This document shows, piece by piece, positions 654-53,094 of a DNA stretch of 64,000 nucleotides; position 1 is the first letter of the stretch, and each line of letters begins with the position of its first letter. Under the pieces are notes generated by a model, which ran no database searches, was not told where the DNA came from, and saw nothing but the letters and a program-made list of their open reading frames with translations. The DNA lies in NCBI GenBank assembly GCA_030704615.1, contig CM060731.1, positions 57,846,001 to 57,910,000 on the forward strand. The letters are read 5' to 3'. Position numbers and translations under genes: made by a program. This DNA comes from Takakia lepidozioides (taxonomy: Eukaryota; Plantae; Bryophyta).

Positions 654-955
654 GGCGCACATTAGAAAAGGCCCGGGAGTTTAATGCGACTCCTTCGGTC
701 CTGCCTGCGTGGCACCCCCCGCCACCCCAGCCGCACCCCCTTCGCCGGCTCCTGCGCGGCTCGCGGTCGCTGCGCCCCGGCGCCCCCTCCAGCCCACCCC
801 TCAAAACCCCCCCCCCCGGCACCCCCCATCCCCCTGCCCGCCCGCCCTCCCCGCCCCCGCCCCGCCCCACGCCCGCCGGCCGTCACCACACCACATGAAC
901 TCTGTGGCACATGACACCTGTCACCACAACCCAACATCGCGCATGGGACATATCG
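654..955 (+). repeat. Left terminal inverted repeat (~300 bp, GC-rich, C-runs)
   Basis: Reverse-complement match to 15265-15563 from GGCGCAC through CCAACATCGCGCATGGGACATATCG; a weaker match continues ~15 bp further. Confidence 0.95.
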
Positions 956-1334
956 TGAGTCGAAAGCATGGATCCATACATGGCAGATGACACATACATG
1001 ATGGGTCACGAAAGTAACATGATGACCATCACGAAAGTCACATTATGACCATAGGCGTGAAGCCCTCACATATGCATGCATAAACAAGGTTGTACATGTT
1101 CAAATTTCAAATTTCAAATTTCAAATTTAGTATTATTTTATGGATTGGGTCTACTTCTAGTATTTAGGATGGATGTATGTAGGTACGGATGGATGAGACC
1201 AGGAAGTATGTGTAATGAGAGGCAACCTCCAATCGTCACCTTCCTTTCATGGTCCTCTCAAATTGTTCTGACCACGAAAGCACAACGTGCAGCCAGTACT
1301 AGCCGTGCCTCAGGTCCCTGAATTGCGCCACGAT

Positions 1335-4147
1335 ATGTCTGTTGCCGAGAATGAAGAAAATATTGCATCCCATCTTGTTTTGCTGCTTCGAAACCAAGTT
1401 CAAATGCCCAGTGTAGGTGTTTTAACCATCATGTACTGCAGTGGCGTTTCCAATGGCATGGCAAGCCTCCTGGCCAAAACTCTGCCGAAGTCGCCTACAT
1501 TCCCTGGAATCGAGTTGCTGATTTCATTACAGGGGAGTCTTCCCGTTCAGATGGCCCATGCACTTTCAGCAGGCATCAGCAAAGATGTCATCCGGAGGGG
1601 TCTCTCTTAGCTCCTCGCAGCAACAGTGCCAGGACTACAACAATGTCATTGGGCTGCAGGTCATGTGTTGCAAGGGCTACTGAATGATTTCCATGAATGT
1701 CCGAGTGCCTAAATCCCCTTGGTGTCATAGTAACGGATTGTTTTTTTGTTATTGTAGGTATCATCGCTCATATGGTTCACAGGACAGATGTAGTTCCTTC
1801 TTGGAGGTTACCCCTGCAATGGCACACAAGAAACGCCGAGTGAAGCCTGCAAAGAAGAAGGGGAGGAAGCCAAGAGCCACGGCCGCTTCCACTGAAGCAA
1901 AGCCAAAACAAATGAGGACCACACAAACAAAATCGGGGGAAGGCATCAAGAGGGGATGCATGTGCAGGTTGTAGTGAAGCAATGTTATGTGGACCCTGAT
2001 ATTGCCGAGCTGGTCTATTATGAAAAGAGACATGTGAATGGGGCTGGACAGGTCTGCCATGGACCTGCGCATCAAGTAGGTTGCGTTTCATTAGCTCCCC
2101 ACCTGAGCGATGAGATGAAATCATAGGTGTTACACAACCTCCGTCTCGGACTAAGCATCAACAAGATAATGGCCAAGCACACATAGAGGGTGAGGGAAAT
2201 CATGGATGGGGGGTTCGAGGTTACTCGTGACACCTTCCTTCTTTCAAATGACATCCGAAATATTGCCAACAAGTGCGATGAAGACACATTCAAAAAGCAC
2301 TCCAATGATGCACAAAGTGTCCGAATGTGGGTGCATGAAAACCCAGGAAGCGTTTTCTACTACCAGGAAGAGTCTAATCACCCTGCTTGGACGTTGAATG
2401 ACAGAAAACTTGACCTTCCATTTGTGCTTGGCATACAAACTGATTGGCAGAGAAAACAGATGCTCAAACACGGCCATCGTCGCATAGTTGCTTGTGATGC
2501 AACCTTTGGAACGAATGAAAAGAAGGTTCGTCAGATTGTTAACCCGAATTTCTTGAAAGCATGGCAAATTACGTTCTTCGTGTGAAGTACTATGTTTTGC
2601 AACCATTTCTTTTCAAGTCACTTCAATTACACATGATTGTTGTTGCAGTACCCGTTATATACCATGATGGTATTCGACGACTGGCTGAATGGTATTCCAG
2701 TGGCTTACATTATCACTGCAAGGTGCAAAACCATCGATCTGACGCCTTGGATGGAGGCACTAAACAAACAAATGACAAGTCGGCAAGTAGACTGTCGTCC
2801 CAATGCATTTATTGTGGATTACACTGAGCTGAAATTGCTGCCATTAGGTACGTCCATGAACTCAGGCAATATGCCTACCATGATGTCTTGGTTACACATG
2901 AATTTCAGTTTACCTACCTGATAAGAGAACAGATCTGTTTGGGGGGATTGTGCTGTTATCTTGTGCTTGTGGCATGTTCGCCGAGCCTGGCAGAAGAATG
3001 CAGTTGCAAAGGTGAAAGACCCAGTATTGCGAGCGGCTATCTTACAAGACCTGGCACAGATCATGTATGATAGAAAGGACACCTCTGGGGATGCAGGTGA
3101 AGCATGGGCCGTATTCAAAATTCTGGACTTGCGGGAGAAGTACCCTTCTGAGACAGAAATATGCACCTACATGGAGACAGAGTGGGGCTTCCAAAAGCCA
3201 AAATGTGGTAGAAAGGATCCCGCAATATACCTCATGCCTCTCAAGACACTAATGCTGCCATAGAAGCATACCACGGGAACCTGAAAGCGCAATTGAAGAG
3301 CACCAAAAGCGTCCTCGGTAGTAGGCGGGTGGATTGGCTCATCCCTGAACTGACAAGTGATACGCTAACCCATTACTGGTACATGTCACATGCAAAGGCA
3401 TATGGGTTCATCCAAAACAAGCGGCAGGAGGGATTTGTTTGCATTTCAATCTTGCTTGCCAAGGACATTCCGGATGTCAATGTACATCTGCCTCATACAC
3501 CGGGAGGCATTGCAGCAGTTGAATGCCACTGCCATTTGGGTATGATATATACTATCCACAATCCAGATTCTAAATGGGCATGTTGTGATTGTCATTGGGC
3601 CCTAAAAGGAAGTATGTGCGCACACCAGGTGAAGGTTCTGAAGATGCTGCACCCCCAACTGGAGGATGGGCTGATTGCAAAGTTATGCGGTTCCATCATG
3701 GGCACATATAAAGGTGGCCTGAACAACTTGATGACTGGTCATGACTCCCCTTCTTCCATCCCATCCTCTTCACAAACTCCCCCAGGTCTGACCTCCCCTT
3801 CAATGGCTCAGAGAACATCCGCTGGTCGAAGTCCACTGCCCAGCCTACCTGCCCTTATCTCCACAGAGTGGCAAACTATTCTTGAACTGACGGATGACAA
3901 CAAATTTCTCCAGCAACATCTTCTTGCCTTGGTGAGAGCTACAAAAGGAAAGATTTTGGACCTCACTGCCATGATGGAGGAGGGTCTTCAGTACCCTGCT
4001 GGGGAGCCAGTTATGACTGATGTTGATGATGGGAATGGAAAGTCACTTGCGCGCTACAAAGACTTTTTGGAGAGGCATGGCTACTCGGGAAATTACCCAC
4101 CCGTGCCCCAAGATTCCAGGAACAGGAAGAGGTTGTACACCGGCTGA
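1335..4147 (+). pseudogene. MULE-type DDE transposase with SWIM zinc finger (spliced; frameshifts and premature stops)
   Basis: Reconstructed across frames: VAYIPWNRVADFITGES, YHRSYGSQD, KRGCMC...LVYYEKRHVNGAGQVCHGP, LGIQTDWQ..HGHRRIVACDATFGTN (D1), YPLYTMMVFD..GIPVAYII, AFIVD (D2), CLWH (CxxH), TNAAIEAYHGNLK (E), RRVDWLI, SWIM CDCHWALKGSMCAH. GT-AG introns at ~2526-2648 and ~2848-2932, plus an acceptor at 1757. In-frame TAG stops near 2124 and 2183, and frameshifts near 1420, 1970 and 3190. Confidence 0.88.
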
Positions 4148-5613
4148 AGGACTTCAGGTAAGCCAGCATAGGGAGGTCTCATGGATCATGTCTTTCTCCT
4201 GGTTCTGAACTTCAGGTCTGTCATTTCCATGGGGTGTATGCTGAGTTAATGGGAAATGAGGCTGGTCTATGCAGGGATAATCTGAAGCAGCCCTTCCGAC
4301 TGAACATGTCTTTTCAAATTTGTGTGTGCATGGAAATGGGATGATGAACTATGAGGGGGTGGTGAAGTGCTTTGGATCTTAAATATTGTGGCTAATACAT
4401 GTGATCTGTAGGAGACGGTGAGGAAGACCAATGCATCTTTTCAGCCTGCCAACGAGGACTTGTATGTTGCTTTTCATTGAGGTTTAGGGTTCAGGACACA
4501 CTCTGAACCGCCTCAGCGGGTTTGAAACTAAGCTCTGCGTATTGTTGCCTTGAAGAGATGACTTTCTAGTATTGAAGACCATCATAACAATAGCATCAGA
4601 TACAGGGCTTATTCTCTTTCGGTTTGTAGCCTCATCAAACTCTTACATGTGAGTTGGGATGTAGTTCAACTTGCTGGGAGTTTGGATCTTTGGTTTGGGT
4701 CACTGTAGTTCAGTAGGTATTTTGAATCAGGAGACCTTCTTCAAATGCATGGGCTCGAACTCAGTTTCTCCATCATGAGGCAAGCATTTTCAAATGAAGA
4801 TGGAATTCCAAATTTACACATTTACATGCATCTTTGTAGTTGAATACCTACTTTGAGTCGCTGGCCATGTACAACTGTTTCATTTGAAGTTGGTATTGTT
4901 TCCTTAGCAAAGGACTAGCATTTAGGGTTCAAAGACATTTTCCAATGCTCTCTGGCGTCCAATACATAAGGTATTGAAGAACGATCACCCATACTTGTCT
5001 TCCACATGAAAGGGAGCATGCACAACTGGCACGAATACAATGCCCATGGAATGTTGTTATTTATATGATTGCAGAGCATAGGTGCAAGGACAGAACTGTC
5101 AGTCATGTTACAGAGAACAACGTGGACACAAGTTCGTTCGGACCCCAAAATGTCTAAAATGTCAAGACTAAGCTTTCTGTCCATCATAAAATGCAGCTAT
5201 GTTGCCCCCACTCCAGTGGGTTCAGATAGCAATAAATATAATGCCTTTCCAACCATGTTTGTGAACAAAACATCCCACCGAGAATGAGAATACTGACTGT
5301 GGCAATGCCAATTCAAAATGACGCATCCCTCAAAAGCACCCGCCACTTTTTCCCACCGCCCTATTGTCATGTGGGTGGAGGCTGCCAATCAGAGACATTG
5401 CCTCCACTTCATGCATGTGTTGTCCATACATGTGGACCAATGCGCACCTCAGCGGATGGTGGAATCAGTATCCCTTTGCTCCTCAAGATGCATGTGCCCA
5501 TCCGAAATCGTGCAGCACATGACTTACCCCCTCCAAAAGTCATGTTCTCCATCCTCACCGAACACATACTCTCCCACACGACACTGCCATTCAGTACTCC
5601 CAAACTCGTTGAG

Positions 5614-7260
5614 TTTCCTCAGATCCCCGATTGCCTCGTCGCACTCTCCCTCACCCATTTGCCTGGCCTTGCTGCCTCTTTCACTTCCGCCTCTCGCACA
5701 TAGCAATGTTAGACGCTCAAGAAGGAGTAGGCAGCTCCTGGCTGCAAGAGGAAGCTTTTGTTGATGTCAACACTCACAAGGAGTTGGTAGGAGATATTAC
5801 TGGCATCGGGGGACTCGCATCTCTGGATTGGAAACATTGGTGGATTGGTCAAAACCCACAACATGGGATATCATTCTTACAGCACATGTATCTGCAGGTA
5901 GAGTGGGCTGGTCTGGCTTTTACGATGACACCAACAGTGCAGCTGCAAAATAGCCTAACACCGTTGTACTCAGGTCAAGATTACTGTGTGCTCCTAACGA
6001 AGAGTGGGGGCCACATGCTTTAGGCCTGGACCCTTCGAAGGAGAACGAGTGTTTTCATATTCTTACCTTGTTTCAATGGGTGGATGAAGGCTGGGACTGC
6101 ATTAAACTGCTAGACGAACTTCCTTCCCCCATCATGCGCAAGCTTCAGAAGGGTTGCAGACCTAAAAGACCTTGGACCAGGGCTGGTGACATTTGCCTAA
6201 CTATTGAGGATGGAGTGATGCATGTCCGATTCCTTCATGCATTTGCGGAAGAACTCATCCTCAGTGTTTTTGCGTGTCTTGCCGCATTGGGGGAGCAATC
6301 ACTTCCACCACTTAGTCTTCTTCTTTCGGTGGGATATGCGAGTGTGTGTTTGGAAAGAGAGAATGATTAGGCAAGAGGTTCAGGTGCCTAATTATGAGTG
6401 GAATTTCAAAGAGGTTGACTGGTCAGTAGCATTATGAACCTCTTTCACTAGCATCACACAATTTGCCTCTTTTCTACGTTTGTGTGACCCTTTAGGGTGG
6501 AATTCTGGAAGCATGGTTGAACAATGTAAATGCCAAAAAACATATTGTCACTGCAATCTTTCCATGTATTCATGTCCAATGTGTACTCCCGGCATTCATG
6601 TTTTCCATTTTGCTTTCACATGGTTTGAAGGTTCTCCCACCTTACTTGCACATGCACGGGTTCATGCACTTGCATATGTTCTGAAGTAGGTGCAGCAGGT
6701 GGAGTTGAAAGTGAATGACACATGCTGGGAGTTGTTGGAATCACTCATTGTTGGGGTTTTCTCATCAGTGAGCAACCCTATTCAGGACCATACTCCTGAC
6801 ACCTCTGTTCACCAACATTGAAAATCAGGAGGCTCAGCCTAAAGCCCTGCTCCTCTTGGGGTATACAACAGATGGATGCTTGTGCGGAGGGATTTCTGCA
6901 GGAATTCTGGAAAGCCTGAACAATTTCCTGAACCAATTTTATATACCAACGTAAGTCTCAGTACCGGATTAACCCCTCACAAATGTAGGTGTATCGCCTC
7001 TTCTGCTGCCCAACCATGGATGCGGGGTCTATGGCCACGACACTATGGCAAACGACGTCTCGTGAGTACTCAGGACCAGCAAGAACATAGTCTCTCCCTG
7101 CGCCTCTGTTCACCAACTTTCAACCACTTTCACAAAACTTTGTCGAGGCTGAGCCTAAAGCCCTGGCCATGTTGGGGTCTGATTGTTGGGCAGGTCATAC
7201 TCAGCAGATTCATGCATGTGTGAAGGACTTTCTAGAGGAATGAAGGAAAGCCTGAACAAT
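5614..7260 (+). pseudogene. Transposon cargo: F-box (+LRR-like) protein pseudogene with a duplicated C-terminal segment
   Basis: FPQIPDCLVALSLTHLPGLAASFTSASRT* (5614-5703) fits the F-box pattern, and the TAG falls where the conserved W is expected. Downstream coding-like fragments follow (5706-6370). Segments 6758-6925 and ~7062-7260 are copies of each other and match the LRR-like segment at 36020-36210. Confidence 0.55.
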
Positions 7261-7569
7261 GTCGAACATAGTCTTGGCTGGTTAAGCGTCCTCATGAAGA
7301 TTTTGCTTTCGGAATGTTGATGAATGCTTTCCCAATCGGTCTGGGCCGAGGGTGGCAGTGTAGCAGGGTTGGTGGTTTCGCAGCTCTAGTCGTTGGTGAC
7401 CTGGCAAACCGCATTTGAACTGGCATATGTTCAATCGCAGCTTAAGTCGCAACTGAAAAAGCACACTCGCACTTAAGTTTGGGCAAAGGCAGACACATTT
7501 GAGGGCGTTTGTTTTTGGTACCGGGGTTTCCAACTTCCTTTGGGCTGCTTTTCATTACGAACTCAGGTC

Positions 7570-8268
7570 ATGGCATACTATTCAGGTACGAATGGCAGTC
7601 TTATTGAAGTTGCCATTGAAGATCCCCGCGATATCTCGGATCTGCTGCAACCGCGATTGGCAGGGACACGCACTGTCGTTGCAAACATTTTGTTTGGTTC
7701 CAGCATGGAGAAATCAGTGTGTCTGGAAGGAATAGTGTTGTTGTACAAGCCGAATGCCCCAAAGTCATATGCTATGCAATATGTTACTATGGGGGTTCCT
7801 TTGTGTATTTGGGATGTGATTGCATGTGATGCATAGACAAAAGGATTTCATGTGGACACAACCACGAAGGCTCAGATTTCAGGGGAGTACTTGTGGTTGG
7901 AGGTGAACATGCAGAGTCCTCAGAAGATCTTCATCATTGTGGAGGCAGATGAGACCGGGTTCTTATCCAAGGTGCCCATTGTGGACCTGAAGAAGACCCT
8001 CGCTGGTATAAAAACTAACGTGATGGTGAAGGGTAGCTTTACAGTGCGACTAAAGAAGTAGTATAGGGTTGAGAGAGGAGAGCATAGTGTTAGTTGGTCG
8101 TTGGGGCTCACTCCCACTACTTCTTTTTTGATTGACAAAACCGACATCGATGAGACTTCTGCCATGGATGAGCTGGTGCACGACTTGGGTGCTCTTAGAG
8201 TCAGTCCAACCCTCTCAGCTTTGCTTGTAGGTGGGGCAGGATCGTCCACGCCAAAATCTGAGAAGTAA
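7570..8268 (+). pseudogene. Transposon cargo: intronless 232-codon gene of unknown function with two internal TAG stops
   Basis: Single frame from ATG 7570 to TAA 8268, interrupted only by TAG at 7834-7836 and 8059-8061. Composition is protein-like and beta-strand rich (SVCLEGIVLLYKP, EYLWLEVNM, VMVKGSFTVRLKK, SVSWSLGLTP). Confidence 0.7.
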
Positions 8269-9067
8269 TTGATAATGCTTCATAGAAGACACGGTCGGCG
8301 GCTTAAGGTGGGGATCCAATTGAGTGCATGTGTTTGCTCTTTCAAAAACTGAGGTTGGAGTTTGTGGGGCAGTTCATAAGTATTGCTGAACTAGAGGAAC
8401 TGCTTGGTCGTTCAGTACTGCCTCGTTTGCACCAAAAGTGCATAAGGGGTTGCATGCAAATGTGCATGTTCCATGCTGAAGATCTGAACAAATGCTGCTG
8501 AAGCAAGCATGGTGTGGTCTGATTGCATGTGTTTGTCCCCCAGCTTCAAGAGGGCTATGGGTGAAGTGAAATTTCAATTATGAAGGGTACCAGACAGTTG
8601 GTAAAGGCACCCTTCAATCCACAGTCATCCATATGTTCACACAGAACTTGCTGAGATTTAATTAAATGGATATGAAACCAATAGGCATTTATGCATAATA
8701 TTGTTTGCTTTCGTAATCTTCCTTACCTGGGGTGATACCTTCAAGATTACATTCAATTGGCCTAAAGCAATTAGCAGAAGGGAAGGGACGTTTCTTATGT
8801 GTCACTTACCCTTCTACATACAGGTCACATGGGAAGTATGTAAATTCAGAAGGAATGATTTTACAGCTCCCATGATGCTGGCAAGGCAGGCTTGCATTTG
8901 TGCACCCTGAAATCAGAACACATAAGTGGATGAAGTAGAAGAAGTGTATATTCCTTGGGAGATAGGGATGGGTACAAATTGAGGCCGAAGTATGAAAGGA
9001 CATTTGAACAGTTTTTTTTTTTTTGGGTTGACGGGCACCATTGTTGTAGATAAGTGCACAGGCTTCG

Positions 9068-9505
9068 GTGAAGATGGGGGAGAGCAGGTATATGAGGAGG
9101 GGAAACATCAGCATATTCAATCCTTTCATGTGTTTGAATGAAAGACAACGGCAAAAAGAGATGGGGGATGGAGAGGCCCATGTGTTCAAACATTGTGCCA
9201 TAGACATGGAAATGTATGGACCACAACGTCCCGAATTTCGTATGTTGGTGCAATCACGGTTGGTGCGCATTAGAGACAACCATGATGCCGCTGTGGAGTT
9301 TATTTCCGAGCCTGATATCAGGTGCCCTCTGTGTATGTATCACTATGGAAATCCGAATGGCATGCATAGAGAACCCTACACTTCGTTGATTCACCATTGT
9401 GCAACACACTGGACCTCGTGGCGTGTAGAGCACAGGTGCTTGGCATGAATTATATTCAATATCATTGCTGAGAGACCAATTGCCACACTGGCACCAGCAC
9501 AATAA
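9068..9505 (+). pseudogene. Transposon cargo: small protein with an SGS3/zf-XS-like C2H2 zinc finger
   Basis: CPLC-x20-H-x11-HRCLA at 9323-9445. The TGA at 9446 is followed in frame by IIFNIIAERP. Confidence 0.5.
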
Positions 9506-10128
9506 CATTCATGTGATTGCGAGGAAGACTGATTGCACTAGGGTGTGCATTGTGCCCATTTACGATTGTTGCATTGAATGGTATGTGCGGGGTGTTACCA
9601 ATTTCCTTTACATGCAATTCCTGGCTTGCTTGTATATGCAATGTAGGCATGTGTTGCATGCAGGGAGCTACATTGAAATACCCTAGTTACCAGTGCTTGT
9701 TAACATATACTTGTTGAAACAGTCCTAGTCCCAAGGTATTGGGCATTATGTCACTGCACAATACATGTAAGCAAGGAAACGGAACAGTAATGTGGCACTG
9801 TGAAGTGAGTGTGAGCAGATTGTGGGGCAACAGGGATCCCATTGGCTGCCATCATGTTGAACATCATGCCCTTGAACCGAAAACATTAGAGAGAAGGAAG
9901 AGACATCCTGAAATAGCATACCCCAATGTAGAGAAGGGCTGACTGGGGGTACGAAAGAGGGACTGAAGCGAACTTGCAAAACAAAGCAGAGAACGTGCAC
10001 TGACGGTCGGAAATGTGCTGCCTGTAAGAAGAATAAGACACGGTTGTGGGAAGCAAAGGACCACAAAAACAACGCAGAAAGGTAGACAATTAATAAATAA
10101 TACTTTATGTAGCCAATTGTATCCAATG

Positions 10129-13100
10129 TCACAATGCTTTGCCGACTTTCCTGGCTCGTTTACACCGTCTGCGTGTGAGGGGAGCTGGAGTGGTGGGCAC
10201 AGGGAGGACAGGGCTGCTGCAATCTCCAACTTTGCGTGGGGGTTTGGGCACTGCATATGAAGGCTCGTGCGATGGGTGACCGTCAAGCTCGTGCAAAATC
10301 ATGTCTTGAAGTTCATATCTTTTCTCGCGCACGGCCTCAGTAGGGAACCAGTCTGATGGAGTTGCAAAGAAAGAAGAACAAAGAATGCAAAAGCAAACAA
10401 TGAACAAGCAATGATCATTGTTAGAAATTCATACAATTTTCGTAAGGATATTCATGTTCATTCTACCTGATACATGGATTCAGCACATTGCGCGAGCACA
10501 TGAACGTCCACAACTAAAACAGGCAGCAAATGATCATGTAAACCACGAGCAGTTGCCTCTTACCGGGCCTGCACCACCAGGGTGTGGATTCAAGTACGTT
10601 TGCACTAAGTACAGCTCAATGTAATGAACTACAAACAGACCACACTGCCATGTGTTGGCCTGCTGTGGAACAGGCGGGCAGAACCACCGCTTGAGGTCAG
10701 TCACATCCTTCCACTGGGGGCTTCCTGGGCTGATTCCTCTGACCATGGCCCAGAAAGTAGCAAACAATGGTTTGAAAGCACGATACTTGTGCAAACTTCT
10801 TATGCTATTCAAGTGAAGGTAGCGAGACGGTTCCAAGATAACTAGACTCCAATGGTCACTGCACAGGGGGGCAACAACAACAGGTTAGTCCACATGTAGC
10901 AATGGAGCACGGCCTTCTTCAAAGGTACGGCAACAAGAAGGTATAAATCCATACACATTGTACTCACTTGCATAAAATTGGCACAATAAGGGCTTCAACA
11001 CCCTCACTCCTGAAGAAGGGGAACCGTCTTTGCATCCAAATCCGCACAGAGTCGACTTGATTTGCCTGCTTTGCACAATGATTGCGAAGGCATATCCATG
11101 TGAAGCTATCTACAACACGGATTTTATTGCACACCTGTTCAGGAAGAGAAAGTATTTTAACTGACACCCAGAAGTCCATCAGACGGTCACTAATCCACCC
11201 CCTTGCAGAATGCAAGTCATCTGCATCTTCTAGTCTAAGAGGAACTTGCGAAACCCGAGAGCCCTTCAAAAACCATATGTCATGTGTTTTTGCCACCACT
11301 GCACCACTGGCCTGCCTGCAAAAAAGGCACATACCTCATTGCTATGAGAATCCGCCCACATAATTATGCACATGCGGGCCACTTGCAAACTGTGGATGGA
11401 AGGTATACCATATCATGCATGAAAAAGGGTGCACAGGCGTCACAACTCACAATACGTTTTCGAGGCCTTCATGTATCCTGCACATCCAAGAGCCTGATAT
11501 GTCAATGCATGTGCAACGTCGTACATACACCATTTCCAATCTGGAGAGGAGAGACCGTTAACATTAAAAAAAACCACAATGGCACTGGATACCTGGACAT
11601 GGTTTTGTTGCGCTGCAATGCAAGTGCTGGTTGGGGCAACACATCCTTTGCCTTCGCAGCAACCATGGTATGGATGGGCTTGGATTTGGCAAAGGTGGCA
11701 GTGGTTGCATTTTTATTCCATGCCCGGACGCTGCCATGTACATCACCATGAAATCGTGTAGTAGCCTCTGTACTGTGAGGTGTATCAGCACCATCAAACA
11801 AGATTTGGTAAGGTCGCATGGGCGAAGGCAGTGCAAGAACCATCGCATTGGGGGTGGGAGGCTCCGTCCCATGTTTAAGCACTGAGGTAGCTGGGGTAAC
11901 GGAAGATCCAACAATGCTTACTGCATGTACAATAGCACCCTCATCAGTGGGACATCGCATATTAAGGGGTGGTGGACTTTGGAACTCAGTTATGTCACAG
12001 AGGGTTTCTTCTGAAGTGAAAGAGGCCACAGGGGGAGGCGGTCGACACAATCCAGGAAATACCTGAGTGGCGCTTAGTTCCATTTCAAGTTGAGTCATGG
12101 GACCTGGTTGTGGGCACTGTATGTCGCCACAAGTTTCTTCAGCAGGCAGGATCGTTTGGGCCTGAGGGAGGACAAGATCCGACAGCACATGTTCTACCAC
12201 GACATTGTTAGCCTCATCAGAAGGTGTGGAATTGCATGCCATGTTAGCGGCCAAAATGAGTGCCCCCATGTTCGTATTTGTACTCAGGTGAACGAGTGCG
12301 CTTGACTGCGGTTCAAGGACAGCCGCCTCCTTATGTCCATACTTGGCATTGCAGAAACGTGCCTCATCCCTTGCGAGCCTCTCAATGTGGACCTCATGAA
12401 GGATTTGTCGGGCAGCCTCAAGTTTGTCATGTAGGCTGGATTCCCCGTAGTCAAGACAACCTGCACACCAACATCGGCATTGTGAAAATGTGGTCATGAC
12501 AAGAAATGAAATGAGAACAACACCAGGGACATTGTTAAGAACCACCAGGAACTGAAATGCAGTAGCACGAACCGTGGTAAGGGCAATATACACCTGGTGG
12601 ACAAGGAAGCCAGCCCATGTCGACATCCTCCCGATTCTTCAAAATTTTGTTGAAGTCCTTCAAGGCTTTTTTCTTGCCCCCTGCACCATCAGTTGGTATA
12701 CTCCCACACCACAATATTCTGAAGGCAATAGGATTCAGAACGGCGAGGTCACGCACAGCCCTGCATCGGACCTCGCGCATGAAAAAATGCAGATCTTCAA
12801 AAAGGTGTTCGCAGTCCTCTTTCCGCACTCCCCGAAGGGCTGCAAGCCCTTCACGCACCTGGGTTCGGGCTTCCTCGTATGGGGGCATGCCTCCGTACAG
12901 GAAGTATCCAATCTGCAGGAAAGTCTCACCCACATTTGTAATGGCACACTGGCCATCGTCAGTGTTGAGAAGATGATTTCGGAGAGTTAACAAGATGGAG
13001 TTTCGGGGAATTGACATAGGTTTCATGTTGTGAACGTGTGACATCCAAAAGCGGAATGTTTGGAGGTGGAGCATGGTGGCGAGCAGCCTCAAGAATGACC

Positions 13101-13535
13101 ATCAACCTATCAGATTCATCCTCAGAATGTGTGAACATATCGGGGGGCAACTGAATGAACATCGAAGAACAAAGAAAGATGATTACGTCTTTGGTCACTT
13201 CATTCCCAGACAGACCAGGGATCTTACCTGCTGCAACAATTTGGTACAGAGGGGACCAACCCCAGATTCTCATCATATTGTTCTCTATCCCATTTTGCCA
13301 TGTTGTCGTCAACAAACTGCCTTCTACGAGCCTCCAACTCAGACTGGGTTGCAATTCCTTTCATTTCGAAATCCAGCAATGCCATGGCATACTTGTGATG
13401 TGCCATCACCAGTTGGCATTCCGCCAACTGAGCGGGATGGTCACGAGTTACTCCAGGACGTATGGCAAATAGCTCCACCACATTTTCCACAGCTGTCTTC
13501 TCCTCTAGAGGTGCATCAAATTGCTCCCCCGCCAT
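10129..13535 (-). pseudogene. Transposon cargo: multi-exon protein with a C-terminal Ulp1/Peptidase C48 (SUMO protease) domain
   Basis: GWISDRLMDFW, VVDSFTW, LIVPILCN|DHWSLVIL (spliced across ~10860-10967), LHLNS, PQQANTWQCGLFVVHYIE and WFPTEAVREKR give the Ulp1 H/Q/C catalytic motifs, with the catalytic D replaced by N. Phase-compatible GT-AG junction 11593/11315. The upstream part (12590-13535) is frameshifted. Confidence 0.8.
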
Positions 13536-13686
13536 TGCAGAGTCATGGAGCTGGTCAGTAATAGAGGAAGAGTAACCAAAAACCCTAAACTTGAAAGAAA
13601 ACTTCAAACAAAATGCAAAGACACGCATAATCAAAGAAGGAGTTGTGACCATGACGGTGCAGGCCAAGAAGAAGGTGTGTTACCCG

Positions 13687-14659
13687 TCATTTAAACCACC
13701 ATTGACCAAAAGCGTTGCCCATCATTTGGTCCCCGAACTCAAATTTCCCAATAAGAGCCACAAGACGATTGAGAAAAGAAGGCTCATCCAGAGATGGAAA
13801 TCCGTCGGGCAACAAGTCGAACTTCATCAAATAGGTCAGTCTTGGGCATGAAACAGGTGCGGGTATGGGAGGCACAACAATATCCGAGGTCAGTAGCAAC
13901 GACGCCTTGACAAAGCCTTCCCTTACCTCTTCTCTACTTAGCGGTGCAAGGGTTGTGGACTTAAGAATGTGCACTGGAGGTCTGCCATCTTGTCTACCTG
14001 AAGATGCAACTCCAGCGTGCACTTTGGGTCGAAGACTTTGCTGCGGCACGACAGGAGGTCGTACAAACGTAGAATTTACAATGCGCTCAGATGGAATATT
14101 TTCCTGTGATGGCAGAGGTGCGTCCAATGAGTTCTTTTGAATGCGCTGAGGTCTAACAGTCTGCTGTGGCAGCACAGGTGGCGTCCAACAACTGGACATC
14201 GTCATCGTCATCATCATCGTCAAGGTCCACTCTTGGCTCCTTTCGAAGACTCATGTGCTTCCTGCGCTTAGGTTCTCGTGTAGTCTCTTCTGCCGTCGTC
14301 TCCTCGCGTTCTACCCTCGTCTTCATCAACTTGCAGGAAGGAGGCTTCATCCTGTGCTTATTAAGAACAACCTCCATGATGTGCTTCTGCCCCTTTTCAA
14401 AAATAGGCTAACTTTTCAGTTTAGGCCCACCCTTTCCCACAACAGCATCACAGCCATCTATCCTGTGAATGGTAAGTTTCTTCTTATCTTTATATTGCTT
14501 AAGACAGTGGATACACTTGAATGGCTTCCTATTATCATCACCGGGCTGCTCAACCCTTGCCTCTGAGTGAGCCTCGCATATGAGATTTTCCCACTCATCA
14601 GAGTCGTACGTTTCATTGTATGTCCGACGCGCTTCGCGTATGGAGGATTGTTTCACCAT
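13687..14659 (-). pseudogene. Transposon cargo: C2HC/C2H2 zinc-finger protein with acidic tract (may be the 5' part of the Ulp1 gene)
   Basis: FKCIHCLKQYKDKKKLTIHRIDGC, basic PKRRK, a poly-Asp tract and a Pro-rich region are spread over three frames. A possible acceptor (TGACCAG) near 13552 could join it to the downstream gene. Confidence 0.6.
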
Positions 14660-15264
14660 ATCGGCGCCCACTCCAAATCCACTACCCTCCTCCTGAAGAA
14701 TCCTCCAGCCGAGCAAAGGTTGCTGGAATGTGAAAGCAAGAACTCAAACTAAAACATGAAGCATGCAAATGGACTGCAACAGACATAAATGGCAAGCAAG
14801 AGGAAGAAAATAGCTGCAAATCACACGAATGACTTCCAAATTCTCCAAAAAGAAACCCTATACTCAAGTCGAATGAGTAATCGCTTCACCGCCACAACTC
14901 AGTCAACAGTTTATAACAGCCGCGATACATACTCCTCAAGGAAGTGCTTGTAACACTGCTTCCGCCGGGATCATACATTTCGGGCCATGCAAACGCCAGG
15001 TAGCTTGGAAAACCTGTCCTGTGGCTGCCATGAATTAAATCAATCAAGCATCGACGTGGGGAGTGACAGCTGAAGGGCCGCATTCGAATCGACAGGTCCA
15101 CCATGTGCGTGCGAACTGGACGCGAAAAGCACGAAAGCATGATCATCGCGATCTCCCTACGGCCATATATGAGTATGTGTCACATCCTGTCATGTCAAGC
15201 CGTCCATCATCATGGGTGATTGCAGCACATGGATCAAGTTGCATCCCATCCATCTTTCGTCATG

Positions 15265-15563
15265 CGATGTGTCCCGCGCGCGATGTTGGGTTGTGGTGAC
15301 AGGTGTGATGTGCCACAGAGTTCATGTGGTGTGGTGACGGCCGGCGGGCAGGGCGGGGGCGGGGAGGGCGGGCGGGCAGGGGGATGGGGGTGTGGGGGGG
15401 GCGTGAGGGGTGGGCTGGCGCGGGGGCGAGGGGGCGCCGGGGCGCAGCGACCGCGAGCCGCGCAGGAGCCGGCGAAGGGGGTGCGGCTGGGGTGGCGGGG
15501 GGTGCCACGCAGGCAGGACCGAAAGGGTCGCATTAAACTCCCGGGGCTTTTCTAATGTGCGCC
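15265..15563 (-). repeat. Right terminal inverted repeat (~300 bp, GC-rich, G-runs)
   Basis: Reverse complement of 654-955, with small indels in the G/C-run segment. Confidence 0.95.
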
Positions 15564-16838
15564 TTTCCTTTTTGGCTCTCGCCCTACCGGGTTCGTCAAG
15601 CTGTGCTAGCATCTTACTCCCATACAGGACATGGTACAGCCCACCTACTCCACCCGTGAGCAAATATCCAGATTGATCCAGTATGTAAAACAAGTGAAAT
15701 TTTGGCCAACCCCTTGACTATCTTGGAAGTTGGATTCCCTTCTCCCCAAATGCCAAATTGGGGGATAATGCAAAGAAATAAAGTAACCTCTTCAATGATG
15801 GGTTAGGAGCTCCGCTGGATTTTCGTAACAGAAGAAATAGAATGGTATCTGTACGGAGGCAAGGACGAGGATGGGGTCCATCCCGGGGTGAACCTGTAAG
15901 ATTGCATCAAACTGCATATGCAAGCTGGGTTCCTTATCCAGCTTCGTCATATTTCTAGCAAACCACCCATTAGGAATTTCTTTCCGACCGCTTGCCAGAG
16001 CTGATGTGAATGCTACCAGAAGCTGTCCCCGGATCACATCACTCCTTCCAAGGGATAGCCTACAGGCGGCAGCTCATGAGCGATGGCAGTGTACAAATCC
16101 TTTGGACTGCACCAATTGGGTACAAGTACAGTGTTTCCACACAGCGGCAGGCATGTGGGAAACCCCACAGGATAAAGTCACATGTGGGTTGGTGACCTAC
16201 CATGCCAGATCCACGCTGTAAGTTCCAAGGGAATTATGCAAGCTCCTGCAAATTCCAACTCTGACCGGGAATTTTCCCGCTTGCTGCTGCATCATCTTAC
16301 CCTTGACCAAAGTTCTAATTTGAACAGGTTTTCACTTTGACTCAATAGAGGGAAAGAAAAACACCATTTCTCATATTTTCCTTTCTTCCCAAGAATTGGA
16401 ACCTTGTTTCTGAGCGAAAAGCTCAAACTGACCGAGTCCAAAGCCACAACCACAACTCCAATCCAGCAGGTCCAAGTTGTACATACCATTTCTCTTACTG
16501 GTCTGGTGTCTGGTATCAGAATTTGCTCATACCAGGTGAGGTACGGTGTCACACTTTGATAATTTCATGACACCACCTGGTATGAGTACTAAGGAATTAT
16601 CAGATTTGCACGAAGGGCATCTGGTATGAATAAGCCCCCCAAGTTTGGGTGGGCCCTGTCTATTAGAGGGTGGTCCAGAAATTAAAAAGCTGGGGTTATA
16701 GTAAAAGAAGGCAAAAGGTGACACCTATTAAATAGGGGATGGTTCAGGCAATTGGGGTAAACGCTTATCCCGTGGTGATTTCTAGGGGTGACATGTGTCC
16801 CAGCCTTCTAGAAGGGTCCCACCGGCCTGAGATGTATA

Positions 16839-17418
16839 CCGTCCCTTCCCAACCATTTAGGCATTTTTACGCTTAATAATTGTTAAAAAACGAACAGGCT
16901 GCTTAGGCACGTTTTTCAAACCATATCTTCACATTAGGCATTTTCATGCTATAAGTTTTTTCAATTCGGCACATGAAAAGAGAAAAAATGATTTTCTTAG
17001 GAATAAAATATAAAAAATAAAAACCCAATGCCCATGGGCTTTTTGTCCCTTGCCAATAAGCCCAGCTCAATTCTCTCCTCCAAGCTTGCTTGTAGCTGGC
17101 CTGCATCATGAGTTCCCACTTCATTAGGTTTTTGTACCTTCACCTTCTGGGTGTGCAGCAGTCCACCAGCGAACAAATAGATTGGGATTTGTAGAAAGTT
17201 ATTTCCGCATGCATATATTTGTATTGATTTTTTTTCAATGAAATTTTCGTCTTATTACAAACAACATGAGCAGAGGCTTGATTGCTGGAATTTTTAGGAA
17301 TTAGGCACTTTGGTCCCATAGTTTCTGAGCAATTAGGCCAAAATTTGAAAAATTCCCAAAACGCGTTAGGCACTTTAATTTTGAATTAATTATCGCCTAA
17401 ATGGTTGGTAAGGGACTG
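16839..17418. mobile_element. Tc1/mariner-type MITE (580 bp)
   Basis: Ends CCGTCCCTTCCCAACCATTTAGGC and GCCTAAATGGTTGGTAAGGGACTG form 24-bp TIRs with 2 mismatches. TA flanks both sides; the interior is AT-rich and non-coding. Confidence 0.85.
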
Positions 17419-20243
17419 TATAAAGGAGAGGCCTGCCTCTTACTACTTATTAACTTACTACATACTAAGTTAGTATCTACATAGTGGGCTGTGCTGCACA
17501 GGCAGGGCCCCTAAAAAAACGCAAACATAGATCTATTAATTAATAGGGACAGTGCAGTGAGCTGAAAGCCCCCAATAGGGTGTTTGTTCATGCATGTAAA
17601 AAAATTTGTATCAGCCGCCAGTTCGTAAAACTCAAAACAGCTTAAAGAAATCACATCAATATTCGCGGGTGTCGTGATTCCCCCCTCTTGGTGCAACACT
17701 GTTCATACCAGTGTTGGTCTGGTATCTTGAATTGGAAATACCAGAAGGGTCCTGGTATGTCGTGCTGAATTTTTTTAAGGCAGATAGATTTTCATATTCG
17801 GATTGATTTTTTTCAAAAACCACTCTATGCATACCAGATTCATACTTTAAAAAATCAGGGCTGCATTGAGCAATGGTATCTGAATGTCAATAACCCAGAA
17901 ATATGAACTCGGATATGATATTAAAAAACAATAAAATAAAAATGGTACTGGAATTCAAATTCAAATTCAATATTGAATGGCCATCTAAACTATTCAAATA
18001 GCCATTTGAATATTCAAGAAAACCACAAGGAAACCTGCTCATCTCATAGGATACCAACCCCCATACAATTATACACTGATCAATTGCATCCATAGTGTCT
18101 CGCAAATGTAGATCATAAAGAGGCGCTCATAAACACATGAAACCCGGCATCCATGATGTCTATATGTGCATCTTAACATGCGACCTGCAGGGACGAGGGT
18201 TTGGAGGACCGCCAGGGAACTCCAGAGTAGGGTAGTACAAATGTTTGGGGGAACAGAGAACAGTAGGTTAGGTGAGACCCGGGTTGATACCCGGCGAAAC
18301 CCAGATACCAGACCAACACAGTCGTTTTGTCCCTTGTTCAACTGGTTCGCCTCGTCATCTGGTTCTCATTCTTTTCTGCTCAGCATCACCTTGGACGCCG
18401 CTTTTTCATTGCTCCATTACTCCGTCCTGCCGACATGTGGGGAAGATCGCGCATCCCTCTTTGCTGACGCTGCTTAATTATCATAACTCCGCGCGCTTGG
18501 GTCTTGTTACTAACCGTGCTATTTTTGCAGTAGTTGTATTTTGCAGGTCTTTCCAGCTTCTCCTTGTGTCACTCCTCCGCTCGTGTCTACTATTTCTTCG
18601 AGTCTGTTCTCCTGATCTTAGCAGGAGTAGGCCATTTTCTCATTCGGACTTAGCTAGCAGCTCGCTGGTAAAACAGTAAGCTTGGTCTGAGAGTAGAGCT
18701 TAGCCCCCATGAGCCTGGTTTCGGGGTGCTACCCCATCGCTTGCGCTGTACGTGGCTCATGCCCTCCAGTCTTGGTTATTTTTACTTATGTTAATATGAT
18801 TTAAAAGGCCTCCATCCCCTTTTGTTTAAAAAAAAAAAAACCCAAACAAAGGAAAAAGATGTTCCTAACCAAGGATTCATAAAATGCAACCAAAACCCAA
18901 AATGTCTCCAAATCCACCTCCGCGCATTACCTCTCTCGGAGGGGCTGGGACACTTCCAGGATTACAGCATATTGGGAGCAACCCAGTTCTAAATCTGGTA
19001 TAGCCATAAACCATACCAGTAGGGTTGTGATACCTGTGCTTAGAACTGGGTTGTACCCTGGCCTTAAACCTGGATACCAGACCAACTCTAATACATACCC
19101 ATAGAACTCCATGGATTAAAAAGTTGCAGGTTCCTGCTTTGTATGTGATATGGTTCATAAAATCGATCAATCCTTCAAAATTAATCACCCATGCCACAAT
19201 GAGCCATGAAGGCACCACCAAGCGACTCAGCAAACTAAAAAAAGACCCAGAACAAAACTGAATGGCTTTGTATCTACACAAGCCTTCACAGCCATCCTAA
19301 CAAAACAGCAACTGTACTGGGCACAGTTAGAAACCAAAAACTTGAATATCCAGAAAATGAAAAACGTTAGTTTTGGCCAGTTGAGCTGATAGGCCAAGCA
19401 GAGCAGCTGCTGTTAGTCCAGAGTCATACACACGGATACCATATTGGCTTCGCCAAAAAGCCACTTAAGCTTTCATAAGAAGTCATTGAAACATTGCAGT
19501 TTGACAAATCCCATCTGTTTTCCCTGACAAAACACCCAAAAAGACCATTCTGAGGGACGACTATCATGGGAGTTAGATGGGGACCAGCCCACATTGTCCC
19601 ACACCTTCAATCCCAGGGTCAACAATGCATGCACATGCACCACACTATTGCACTCTAACTCAACAGTAATCTCAGAAGCAAGCGAGTAACAGTCAGGCAC
19701 CCAATTATACATCACCCAGGAGTGGCACAGGCTGGCCCATAAGACCACAACAATGACTGGAAAGGAAATCCAGGTGGGGTGAACAACTGACTTGTCACTT
19801 ATGACCCTAGCCATTTATTGACACAGAGTCTGGGACACAATGGGTTGGCTTGCATTGCCAAGCCTGAAACTTTGAGATGGCCACTTTGGTGAGGATCATA
19901 GGGCTGAAACTTGGCGGCATCAAAGGTGTAACAAGCTCATTAAGAAGTGGATGAGCAAAAACACACATGGCCATAGCCACATAGGTACACCTTCTTACCT
20001 TTACACTAAACTTCTATCAAGAACGTTATTGTTCTAAGAGCTTGATTGAGAAGACCAAAACCCGGCTCGGGCTCAAACAGACTTCATGTTTCAACCTCAC
20101 AATGGTGTTTTTGGGGTTGTCAGAACTCGAGCTAAGGGCTACGCTTATTTTGGGTTGACAGAGGAAACAACAAATGTTGGTGAGATCAAGGAAGAAAGGG
20201 AGCCAGACGGCAACCAAACTATGTGATCACAAAATGCTGCCTG

Positions 20244-26200: not shown

Positions 26201-29200
26201 AAAGAGAGTCCCAGCAAGTCCCCGGCGACCTGCCACGCCGCGAGGCGGGGGAAGAGCACAATCATCTCCCACTATCACCATCTGCAGCAGTGGCAGACAG
26301 ATCACACTCAATTCCTTGGTTAGACTCCAAATACACCAGGCTTCACCAATTCTAAAGTCCACGACACTTTTTGCATGGTCTAGTAGGCTTTACACCTAGC
26401 TGGTAGACCAGTCTACCCTGTTAAAGCTAGATCCATCTGCCAAGTACAGCGAAACAATCCAGCTCAAACTTAAATAGCATTGACCATGGCATCTCCATCA
26501 AAGCAGGTGGACAAACCTCAACTTTGTAGCCCTCAGCCTTTGCTTGTTCAGCCGCCAACCCAAAGTTCAACCGGTCACCTGTATAATTCTGCCAAATCCA
26601 TGCTCGTCATTTAGAACTAGAGTCATGATTACAATGTGTTCACACAACTGCTGCCAAATGTCTCTGACAAGAAAGTACCTTCACAACCAAAAAACAACCA
26701 GGAGGTCCAGTAACAGCTCGAATACCCTGCAATAAAATGGGATGCCAAGTGAGCATTTGCCATGAACAAGCATACACTGTGATTCGAACAAAAAGTTGAA
26801 GGAAACAAAATTCCTACACCACTTGGTGGTAGTGACCAGAAGTACTGGCAACAAAGAACACGTACCACATACCTTTCGCAGGAGCATCAGTGCAAGCACA
26901 AGTAAATACTATCAGTTACACTTACAGCTAAAATAGCATTGACAGATGGGGATGTAAAAACATCTCCACAAATGGCAGCTGTTAACATGCCCTCTCCCAC
27001 ATATCCTGCATGAGCTGGTTCATGCCCACTTCCGCCACCTGTGCATTGGATAGACTGACGAATGATTAACAACTGGAAATGATGGCATCCCTAATCTTAC
27101 CAATAACTGGTTATAATCACCATGTTCTCATACTTATGACCAACCTAGAGAGTGTGAGAGAAGAGAAATGAAATGAAATGAAATGGTACCTTATAGCGTC
27201 CGCGGATGGCCAGCAAGAGCTAGGAGATGGACAGAGAAGGAGCAAGGACATGGGGGAGTGGGGGGAGTCATCACAAGGTTCCGAGGATGGTCACATGAGT
27301 ATGGAAAGGAGTAGCAGAAAGAGAGAGAGAAGAGAACAGACAGAGAAAGTCGTGACGTCCACTGGATGCTGAGAGAGAGAGTGCTTCATCAGACCTAGAC
27401 AGCAATTTTTACCTTCACATGTCTACCTGATGGCCAGGTCCACTATCCAGGGCTAGCATCTATAGGTGTGCACAAATCATGGTCCTGAGAATCAGTTTAA
27501 AGCATGGTGGAGAAGTGGTCACTTTGTCTCAATTGGGTTCAGACCTCAACTCTGCTTTTCCAAATGAGAAAGCTTGGCTGTCTGTATTCCAGATACCAAG
27601 GCTACAGCAAACAACATCTTATCAGTACACTCTATTCCAGATGCTGTTTAGGTGATAACTGGTGGGGATCTTTAACAATAGAGCAACTCATTCATGAGTA
27701 ATGCTCGAAGCAAATGAATGGCTTATGGAGAAGGTTGCACCTGAAATTACTGCAACTTTGTCATAGTTGAGTCGAGACACATCCGCACGCAATACAACTT
27801 TCACCTACAAATCTAACACCAGAATTAGCAATCGAGGACGTACGTGACACTCCTGACAAACCACAGCCTTCAATCTTCATTGGAGAATGAACCTCCACAT
27901 ATACCGATATCCTAGTTCCACCTTTTAGAATCTAGCACAAAGAGTATAAAAGGACGATAGAAACAGAAGCCTGACCAGATTACACTTACCTCAGGAAAAC
28001 CATCAAGGTAGGAAAGATTAGGGTAAGTCTCCACCAAACCCTCGATCAATTCTATCACCACATCTGCAGACAACTTAAAAAGTAACAATTGAACTTATCA
28101 GTCTCAACTCATTCCCTCAGTCCAAGCATTGCAAAGTAATGCAGTTGGACATCTGTTTGGGATGCTTTCAACACTTGTCACTTCCACCTTTCCCTTAAAA
28201 AAGTCCTACTCTTTTGTGTTGCCAGACAATCAGAACCATCAGTGCAACCACATGATGACCAGATCATCACAAAATCCTCCCTCATTAAGGAAGCTCTGCA
28301 CCAGCTACAGATGTTCCATCACCTAATCCAATAGCATATCGTTCGAAAACATCTCCATGTATGTCCCACATAAAGTAAAGACAAAGTCCTTTCAAGGGAG
28401 TGTCCACAATCCGTAGTGACTGCGCTAGAGATCATGTCAGCTCAAACAGTGAAGGGACCAGCAATTTGTGTAAACAACTGTCCCACTAGATGACAATGTG
28501 ACTCTCGATCCAGCATTTTGCAATCATACCCATCAGCCAAGTTGATAGGTAGTTTTTCAAAAAGGAAACTTGGCTCTAAACCTTGTACCATTCGCAACAG
28601 CACAGAAAGTATGGAACCAGCCCAACGAAGGACCCAGAACCCTATCATGGAGAGCAACAGAACCTTCTACTTGCATTGGTTTTGTGCGAAAAAATCAAAA
28701 GCTACAATCCAAATTACACATATTCACTACCACACCATCTGAAGTCTGAGATACATCTCTATCTGCCTGGCCAGTCATTGCATCTCTAGCCTTTGTGTTG
28801 AAAAATAAAGAGAAAGAATTTGTCCATGTAAAACGCAATGTGCAATCACACACTGACTAAGGCACAACTTGATAGATAGTCACGGATTGACTCCAACATG
28901 ATTGTAACAAGGGAAGATAGTTGCATCCCTCTCCACAACCGTTTGAAGGATGTAGGACTGAATATCACGTTTGAAGACAGGCAATATCATGTGCGGACCA
29001 GTCCTCGGAGGTTACAATGGATGCAAACGGGGCAAAACAACCCTGTTGGATACTTCATGTGGGTTACATGATGGCGCCACTAGACCCATGCTATTTCAAC
29101 CAGACCAATGTACTGGTCAACTCAGAGCTACCCCTCAGTACCAAGTACCAAGCACATGGGTGGGTCCATCCTCTCGGAAGACGCTCGACCTTTGCCAGCA

Positions 29201-29726
29201 CTCTTCCCAGGCTTGGAAGCTGCCGTTAAAATGGCAAGTTTGGCTTCTCATCCACTCCGAGCGATCACATCACCTTCAACTAAATGACGATCCAACGCTT
29301 CCTCCAGATATGGATAATGCACACTTGAAAGAATGTAGCATTGGTCAAAGAACTAGGTTGCCGAACTAGGTTGCCGTCTCCTGATTGCTGGTGCATCACA
29401 AGCCATGAAAAGCCTCGAGGAGTCCAGATGTCAAGACATCCACATGATTATAATTGTGTTTGGAGAGCAGCAGGAACCGCTTGAATTCACAATATCTTAA
29501 TATCTCTTCAAAGACACCACGTTCTCAGACCAACAACTCAAAAGGGGATGGAAGAAACAGCTTATCTCTGGGAGCAGTGCGACTGAACGGACTAAGCTCA
29601 AACAAACATTTATCAGTTCCTTGAAGCTGCCACAATTGGGACTCTTATGAATCGGCGTGTCAAGCTGCAACAAGCAACAACAGGCTTACCGTTTGGATCG
29701 TTGATGAGTTTTTTCCCTCGTCCCAT
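20244..29726 (-). CDS. DAK: Dihydroxyacetone kinase / triokinase-FMN cyclase (DhaK+DhaL), multi-exon
   Basis: Exons encode [12 protein letters not shown] (29690-29726), [137 protein letters not shown] and [28 protein letters not shown] (20244-20351). Boundaries are GT-AG. Confidence 0.95.
24262..24470 (+). mobile_element. Diverged copy of the SINE-like repeat at 42208, inside a DAK intron
   Basis: GCCAACTCAGCTATAAAATGGTGGTCATGGGTCAACC and CAGTAACCCTTTGGGGTGAA resemble GCCAACCCAGCTACAAAAGGGGGGTCCAGGGTCAACC and CAGTAGGCCTTCGGGGTGAA of the 42.2-kb element. Boundaries are approximate. Confidence 0.5.
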
Positions 29727-31057
29727 TCGATCTTTGAAAGAGGGGAGTTTGTGAATGCTCGCCAGCTTGAAACTCTTGAAAACAAGGCAAGGATCGAGGT
29801 CGAGTGTCGCTCAGCACCAAGAGAAAGAAATTCCCGGAACTCGGGCCAAAACGGTATGGCTCAGAGGAGCGGGAGAGCAAGGAAGATGAGTCTTGCCTCG
29901 CGATGGCAGGAAGGATCAGGGGCTCCTTCAGTAAGGACAATGAGCGAAATCCACAGCAGGAAGCAGATAAGTCAGGAGGAGAGAGAGCAGAACGGTAAAG
30001 GCAAAGAAGAAGAGACCACGAGAGGCTCATACACAAGCACGAGTTGCCGAGTGATGACAATGAGAGAAACCACAAACAGCTGGAAAGCCAATGACGAGAA
30101 TTCCGAGAAAGCAAGGCCTACTAGCAGCAGGGAGCATCAGGATACCAGGGCGTAGCGTGAGAGAAGAACAAGTTACAGCTAAACCAGAACGGGGAGAGAG
30201 AACGAACAGCAGTAATGAACTCCCCAGGGAAGGCAACAGAACGGGGACAATCGCAAACGACAATCGACAGACACAAACAGTACGATCAACACGCCGCGCG
30301 ATTAGCGATTACACCACCAGGGACGACAAGGTGAAGAGGGATTGCGAGAAGACGATAACGGCTAAAGACGGGAGGAAATAACAACTAGGAGCGCCGGGTT
30401 AGAAGGCGGAAGGGGAATGTAAGAAGAACAGTGGCAGCAGCAGTCCAGCAACAACTCGCCGCACAAACAGCAGGCACAACTGGCAGCCCGCTGCGAGAAG
30501 CAAAGCTGAGCGAGTACGATTACAATGAGCAAGGCTCAGTATCGCTGAGAGGGAGGATTAAGAACTGTAACACTCCCACAAGCATGAGCCGGATCACAGG
30601 AGCCGGGACGAAAAGCATCACGAGGCCATGGATTAGAGAACGCGAGGAGAATGCTAAGGGCGAGGAAAGTGACGATGGCAGAAGGCGAGGCGGTGCATCA
30701 GTTGCAAGACAAGAAAACTGGAAACCAAGGAAATGCTGTGAAGGCACGGCAGCATTTATACAAGAGGGCCACTGTGCAGCGAGCCAAGGTCCCCTCTGTC
30801 CCTGCCCTCCTGCCCGCTGCCGACCGGCTCCCCCGGTAACCGCGTTCCAAAAGTCTTTCCCCTGCTTTACACGTACCTGAGGAGTTGAGCCCACGATCGC
30901 GGGACTCCAACTGGAAGCATTTTCTGCTTTCTTCTTCCTTTGATCATTCTCTAAAGGGATCCGATGGTGCACCGGACATTGTCGGTCGGCCCACCCCTTC
31001 CATCTCTCCGCACTATCATACGGGTCGGCCAAATTGTGCTCATTATCGGACCACATA

Positions 31058-39807: not shown

Positions 39808-46674
<6,867 letters not shown>

Positions 46675-53086: not shown

Positions 53087-53094
53087 TCCAAGAG

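Follow-up and report, generated by a model that had tools for sequence, protein, structure and literature searches.

What does the unit bounded by terminal inverted repeats (TIRs) at positions 654–15563 of a 64,000-nucleotide stretch of the Takakia lepidozioides genome (GenBank assembly GCA_030704615.1, contig CM060731.1, positions 57,846,001–57,910,000 of the forward strand; this whole stretch is called the window below) really carry, and does what it carries belong to it? A preliminary description of the window had read the unit as a Mutator-like element (MULE) loaded with a transposase, an F-box/LRR gene, a 232-codon open reading frame (ORF), a zf-XS-like gene, a zinc-finger gene and a Ulp1 gene, and had proposed that this cargo might form a counter-defence kit against silencing. 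We find that the unit is most probably one old MULE copy from a non-seed land plant, now dead but of an autonomous type with two genes, and with a middle of non-coding filler. Its first gene, beside the left TIR on the plus strand, would encode a transposase of the DDE type that has a SWIM zinc finger. The second, on the minus strand, would point inward from the right TIR and encode a single large protein, in which a zinc finger, two conserved segments that are helical or of an unrecognised kind (X and Y) and a disordered linker precede a Ulp1/C48 cysteine protease domain. All searches were made ORF by ORF on single reading frames, with exons unspliced.

Ends of the element and its transposase

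654–973, plus strand: left TIR, very C-rich, starting with GGCGCACATTAG
1355–4144, plus strand: Mutator (MULE and SWIM) transposase pseudogene, in the pieces 1355–1684, 1896–2582, 2637–2918, 2925–3185 and 3188–4144
15248–15563, minus strand: right TIR, 88% identical to the left TIR over a 330-nt gapped alignment

The two ends define an element of 14.9 kb. Without gaps, 654–891 pairs with 15326–15563 (238 nt, 80% identity), and with gaps the pairing extends to 654–973 against 15563–15248 (330 nt, 88%), which gives TIRs of about 320 nt. The same 37 bases open both TIRs, and this terminal 37-mer occurs at just these two sites in the window. A repeat scan of the interior found no further pair of long repeats, direct or inverted, of the sort that would mark a nested long terminal repeat (LTR) or TIR element. 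With the TIRs exactly at both ends and transposase homology on the plus strand, the description of one TIR-bounded Mutator-like unit at 654–15563 holds.

Frames across 1355–4144 share 35–53% amino-acid identity with ORFs found in as many as 87 related loci, which lie on plant-like metagenome contigs, some of these being near-duplicates of one another. When the last exon (3212–4144) was used in an exhaustive profile search, 468 relatives were retrieved, with a top identity of 45%. The full-length relatives that could be named come from the ferns Adiantum capillus-veneris and A. nelumboides and from the liverwort Riccia sorocarpa, and the Riccia and Adiantum proteins are annotated as ‘SWIM-type domain-containing protein’. 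Three full-length relatives (P0026, P0030 and P0145) score above the Pfam cut-off for MULE, and for two of them (P0026 and P0030) Pfam SWIM falls slightly below its cut-off (E about 1e-3). The motifs CLWHxxRAW and QDTNAAIE are conserved, and a SWIM-type CxC...G..CKH motif is invariant in the transposase alignment. No similarity was found between the TIR sequences of the window element and those of the related loci.

The window gene is interrupted by in-frame stops at 2124–2126 and 2184–2186, where the corresponding frame of locus L003 is uninterrupted, and by a frameshift near 3186, which appears as split alignment segments at a point where L003 and L004 are continuous. With two in-frame stops and one frameshift, the window transposase is a pseudogene.

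As a separate observation, the Riccia sorocarpa relative (L007:10001–15922, encoding P0030) is a spliced transposase-related gene that lacks TIRs and has no Ulp1 in its vicinity, and is possibly a domesticated or stranded copy.

The accessory gene and its recurrence in related loci

14411–14743, minus strand: C2HC zinc finger (C-x2-C-x12-H-x4-C) at the gene start, aligning with L005 8118–8516 and L061 881–1576
13690–14250, minus strand: stretch of 187 open codons separating the zinc finger from segment X, with no detectable relatives
12962–13679, minus strand: conserved segment X, with a WGW(S/H)P(L/F)Y motif, split over the frames 13679–13227 and 13360–12962
12538–13101, minus strand: conserved segment Y, found with a profile from 8 relatives (E 1.9e-6) and by BLAST matches to L012 and L005
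11505–12638, minus strand: low-complexity linker between Y and Ulp1, Pro/Ser/Thr-rich, open over 378 codons
10537–11335, minus strand: Ulp1/Peptidase_C48 domain in two pieces, 11335–10967 and 10884–10537

The second gene is broken and spans 14743–10537 on the minus strand, in the order zinc finger, X, Y, low-complexity linker and Ulp1/C48. It converges with the transposase gene, one starting from each TIR, and the genes thus point inward from both ends as had been described. The call of a Ulp1 domain on the minus strand is also upheld, as the piece at 10537–10884 reaches 34.2 bits for Pfam PF02902 against a cut-off of 20.7 (E 9e-11 in the full ORF scan), with 10967–11335 forming the upstream half of the domain. 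When profiles derived solely from the relatives were run against all reading frames of the 64-kb window, the top matches were exactly the expected minus-strand frames for the finger (E 7e-6; its Pfam C2H2 match is weak), segment Y and the two Ulp1 pieces (E 5e-7 and 3.5e-3).

Segment X did not reach significance with its relatives’ profile in any of the window reading frames. It is collinear with single ORFs in L006 (14265–15236) and L005 (6503–7105), and since it is split over two frames here, a frameshift in the window copy is indicated. Its predicted structure, a poor model (mean pLDDT 63, pTM 0.31), is mainly a single long helix. The 187-codon stretch ahead of X is probably part of the accessory gene, and no homologues of the linker ORF (374 aa) were found in a homologue search. 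The protease domain retains the catalytic His (HWSL) and Cys (WQCG), with Asn in place of the Asp of the relatives (H.DS); L023 and L083 retain all of His, Asp and Cys in their Ulp1. That this copy is decayed, as had been stated, is therefore seen in both genes: in the stops and frameshift of the transposase, and in the frameshift and the Asp-to-Asn change of the accessory gene.

Parts of the accessory gene recur across the family. The family Ulp1 profile was matched near the transposase in 26/87 related loci, or 22/43 when only loci of at least 8 kb are considered. L044 has finger, X, Y and Ulp1 in order on one strand, convergent with its transposase, and L006 has X and Ulp1. L005 (1–10913, with TIRs of at least 655 nt) and L013 (1–8842, with ends 99% identical) hold finger, X and Y within their own long TIRs. 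L061 (166–14726, with its near-duplicate L062) is 14.5 kb long with TIRs of about 400 nt, and its finger, Ulp1 and transposase lie in tandem on one strand. Both layouts, with Ulp1 either on the same strand upstream of the transposase or on the opposite strand downstream of it, occur among the related loci, which fall into two contrasted groups (L049/L050/L052, L057/L064, L068/L073 and L082/L083 versus L006, L014, L019, L022/L023, L042/L044 and L066), so the Ulp1/transposase pair has been rearranged at least once in the clade.

Considering this recurrence in a fixed order beside related transposases, the finger and Ulp1 appear to form a long-standing accessory gene rather than independent cargo, and this gene would be an old companion of the transposase clade and not a recent capture. 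The preliminary description had listed a zinc-finger gene and a separate Ulp1 gene; both parts are found (14411–14743 and 10537–11335), but a single gene comprising both is more likely than two separate ones. The same recurrence supports the view that these parts belong to the element family and were not brought in by a nested insertion with its own ends.

One of the loci is unusual in another respect. In L006 (1–21188), plant-like transposon sequence of about 46% GC that includes transposase and Ulp1 runs into densely spaced genes of bacterial type (sigma-70, MarR/ArsR and ADH; 63–73% GC), the composition changing abruptly near 15200. The contig is most likely chimeric through misassembly, and not a transposon residing in a bacterium.

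The middle region and competing explanations

4145–10536, no strand assigned: 6.4 kb separating the convergent genes, a middle region in which no gene is recognisable and which contains the F-box-like and zf-XS-like ORFs
6759–7263, plus strand: dispersed non-coding repeat of about 180 bp, in two copies (6759–6919 and 7070–7255), with a third copy at 36021–36198 on the opposite strand

None of the F-box/LRR, 232-codon and zf-XS-like genes of the preliminary description withstood closer inspection. No F-box, F-box-like, LRR, XS or zf-XS family of Pfam was found at E ≤ 1 among the 94 stop-to-stop ORFs of at least 65 aa on both strands of the whole element, for which C48 was the sole significant family, and the 38 plus-strand ORFs of 32–64 aa in the middle region had no Pfam family at E ≤ 1 either (132 frames scanned in total). 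The longest plus-strand stop-to-stop frame within 4145–10536 has 155 codons; a 232-codon ORF is absent. The F-box-like ORF (5954–6367), one stretch of which is loosely like the start of an F-box, has no PDB relative and no homologue among candidates of comparable length. The zf-XS-like ORF (9050–9445) has just a loose C-x2-C...H-H pattern, with no PDB relative and no usable Atlas hit. PDB sequence searches with four middle ORFs returned nothing below E 0.26, and both the F-box-like and the zf-XS-like ORF gave low Atlas recognition and no usable Atlas hit, the two values being 1905 and 2003, in either case below the level met by 91% of real families.

The related loci point the same way. Frames of 4145–10536 had zero matches in the 87 loci, whereas the transposase, Ulp1, finger and Y frames do match. 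Rfam, tRNA and tandem-repeat scans of this region added nothing, and no transposable-element protein, element end or host-gene fragment was found in it. We suggest that the 6.4 kb would be non-coding filler with short dispersed repeats, in which the F-box, zf-XS and 232-codon genes would be chance reading frames.

Two further candidates were considered for the middle region and rejected. First, an LRR reading of a 300-bp duplication was discarded, as the dispersed repeat has its third copy at 36 kb and indels that are not multiples of three; its copies are about 70% identical as DNA versus about 50% as protein. Second, a private array of short motifs, of the kind targeted by VANC, was suspected from TGCATGTG(TT), which has 6–8 copies in 5412–9655, almost all on the plus strand and with exact matches about 18 times denser than outside the element. 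This was dropped considering that equal-sized control segments have equally frequent top words: TGCATGTG has 6 plus-strand copies in the middle region, and the best words of the control segments themselves reach 4–7 copies. The motif GGGTTACA was absent in this word search.

Some side observations concern these repeats. The third copy of the 180-bp repeat sits 29 kb from the two inside the element. The control segments (28348–34739 and 47524–53915) have frequent 8-mers of their own (AAATGTTA, 7 copies, and ATACTGGA, 6 copies), which may mark other repeat-bearing elements.

Several points weigh against reading the unit as one old two-gene MULE. First, this copy lacks a convincing 9-bp target site duplication (TSD), though TIRs that are 88% alike predict a better-kept one: the outer 9-bp flanks, CTGGCATTT and TTTCCTTTT, match at 5/9 positions, and TTT alone adjoins both ends. 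MULEs generate target duplications of 8–11 bp (PMC6446971), and the related L061/L062 has TIRs with a perfect 9-bp TSD (AATGTAAAG), which indicates that this transposase clade acts like other MULEs; the lack of a convincing TSD at the window copy may reflect decay or rearrangement. Second, the two genes lie 6.4 kb apart, versus 0.9–2.0 kb in convergent relatives (from the last transposase match to Ulp1), and the excess of 4–5 kb is unexplained. Third, the closest subclade, L005/L013, has no Ulp1 detectable with the Ulp1 profile, so Ulp1 is not universal in the family. Fourth, the pieces of the window’s own transposase, taken alone, reach neither Pfam MULE nor Pfam SWIM. Finally, the relatives are distant (27–53% identity in the transposase), and fast-evolving orphan genes in the middle could evade all searches.

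A possible but clearly less probable explanation is that the unit is not one simple insertion, its middle 4–5 kb consisting either of one or more non-autonomous elements nested in it or of captured DNA, in both cases lacking recognisable ends, or its halves coming from two copies joined by recombination or rearrangement. The long intergenic distance would fit this, as would the two dispersed 180-bp repeat copies inside the element with a third at 36 kb, and either version would explain the missing duplication at flanks that match at 5/9 positions. However, neither an internal LTR or TIR pair nor a further set of ends was found, and the middle has no transposable-element protein domain. Gene order and orientation are exactly as in single relatives such as L044 and L013, and TIRs that are 88% alike fit one old element.

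It is considerably less likely still that the Ulp1 domain is a passively captured fragment of a host gene, acquired as in Pack-MULE transduplication and useless to the element. Capture of host fragments is frequent in plant MULEs, the Ulp1 domain of KI-MULEs is itself regarded as transduplicated (PMC13317346), and in the window copy the catalytic Asp is replaced by Asn and the reading frame is broken. Against this, Ulp1 is joined in a constant order to segments peculiar to the family, recurs in two layouts beside transposases 27–50% identical to that of the window, and retains His, Asp and Cys in several relatives. In addition, the element keeps its own transposase, unlike Pack-MULEs.

The weakest explanation, a multi-gene counter-defence kit in which F-box, SGS3-like zf-XS, 232-codon, zinc-finger and Ulp1 proteins act on ubiquitin, SUMO and small-RNA pathways, is very improbable and largely refuted here already: the Ulp1 and zinc finger are real and conserved in the family and the two middle ORFs bear the loose resemblances given above, but the F-box, zf-XS and 232-codon parts are unsupported and absent from the 87 related loci, and the LRR-like repetition is a non-coding dispersed repeat.

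Known Ulp1-carrying elements and a possible role for the accessory protein

A single old copy of a two-gene MULE would not be a new kind of element. The cargo had been held to be unlike that of any described element, yet the design of a transposase with a zinc-finger/Ulp1 accessory protein is already described for plant MULEs (PMC13317346, PMC12973397), and the window element conforms to this known MULE-plus-Ulp1 design (KI-MULE/VANDAL-like), as an ordinary representative with long TIRs. The KI-MULEs (Kaonashi) and Ulp1-carrying VANDALs of Arabidopsis and other eudicots likewise combine a Mutator transposase with an accessory protein ending in Ulp1/C48, for which an anti-silencing role has been proposed (PMC13317346, PMC5735166, PMC10398659). 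They differ in being described as non-TIR MULEs, whereas the window element has TIRs of 320 bp. Neither a VANC-like part nor a DUF1985-type family was detected in the window element by the Pfam ORF scan, for which C48 is the one named family of the accessory gene; the C2HC finger, X and Y, which precede the protease, are particular to its clade, and by the word counts against control segments no private array of short motifs is evident in its non-coding DNA. Capture of Ulp1 in non-TIR MULEs has been placed at about the monocot–eudicot split (PMC13317346), which contrasts with relatives of the window element on DNA of ferns, liverworts and moss-like contigs.

MULEs that combine TIRs with a Ulp1 domain are also known. 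MULEs with Ulp1 domains have been reported from Arabidopsis, melon, rice and grapevine (PMC13317346, PMC2528002), those of melon, rice and grapevine sharing the TIR-bounded form with the window element, and Peptidase_C48 was found to be a recurrent domain of the non-transposase proteins of active TIR transposons in a survey of 1007 plant genomes (PMC12973397). These reports concern mostly seed plants, unlike the window element. In the literature, we found no paper that mentions Ulp1, MULE and bryophyte together, and no description of a zinc finger-X-Y-Ulp1 architecture. Maize MuDR, with its mudrA transposase and mudrB accessory gene, resembles the window element as a two-gene autonomous MULE with long TIRs and convergent genes, and makes 9-bp TSDs (PMC6446971, PMC12973397); however, its MURB protein is unrelated to Ulp1, and the window transposase belongs to a SWIM-bearing clade. 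The window element also differs from Pack-MULEs in that a transposase is present and no host gene fragment was recognised in its middle.

An intact transposase of this family would bind the long TIRs, excise the element and reinsert it elsewhere. The accessory protein would be a protease of the SUMO type, or for a related ubiquitin-like protein, brought to the element by its zinc finger or by the transposase. It may help expression or transposition, a role we propose because Ulp1-carrying VANC/KIU proteins have been described for VANDALs and because the MuDR accessory protein binds the N-terminus of its transposase (PMC12973397). Some role of the accessory protein in the propagation of its own element seems rather probable, and an anti-silencing role in particular is a tentative suggestion. 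The window copy itself can do neither, as both of its genes are broken.

A stronger version, which we regard as improbable, would make the finger-X-Y-Ulp1 gene an independently evolved, element-specific anti-silencing factor, the TIR-MULE counterpart of eudicot VANC/KIU, with the 6.4-kb spacer as a decayed target field or as the hiding place of a fast-evolving orphan helper gene. For the preferred reading, a dead two-gene MULE, the importance of the locus lies in the association of a fixed multi-part accessory gene ending in Ulp1 with one Mutator clade on fern, liverwort and moss-like DNA. Through this clade, the function of Ulp1 proteases carried by transposons becomes testable beyond flowering plants, with younger, intact copies as the right material.

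Two minor features lie elsewhere in the window. Just beyond the right end of the element, the two arms of an inverted repeat (39 nt, 82% identity) at 16824–17433 enclose about 530 bp, possibly a small insertion resembling a miniature inverted-repeat transposable element. Further along, an open 244-codon frame at 42938–43672 has an RWD domain (Pfam E 6e-16) and is probably part of a host gene.

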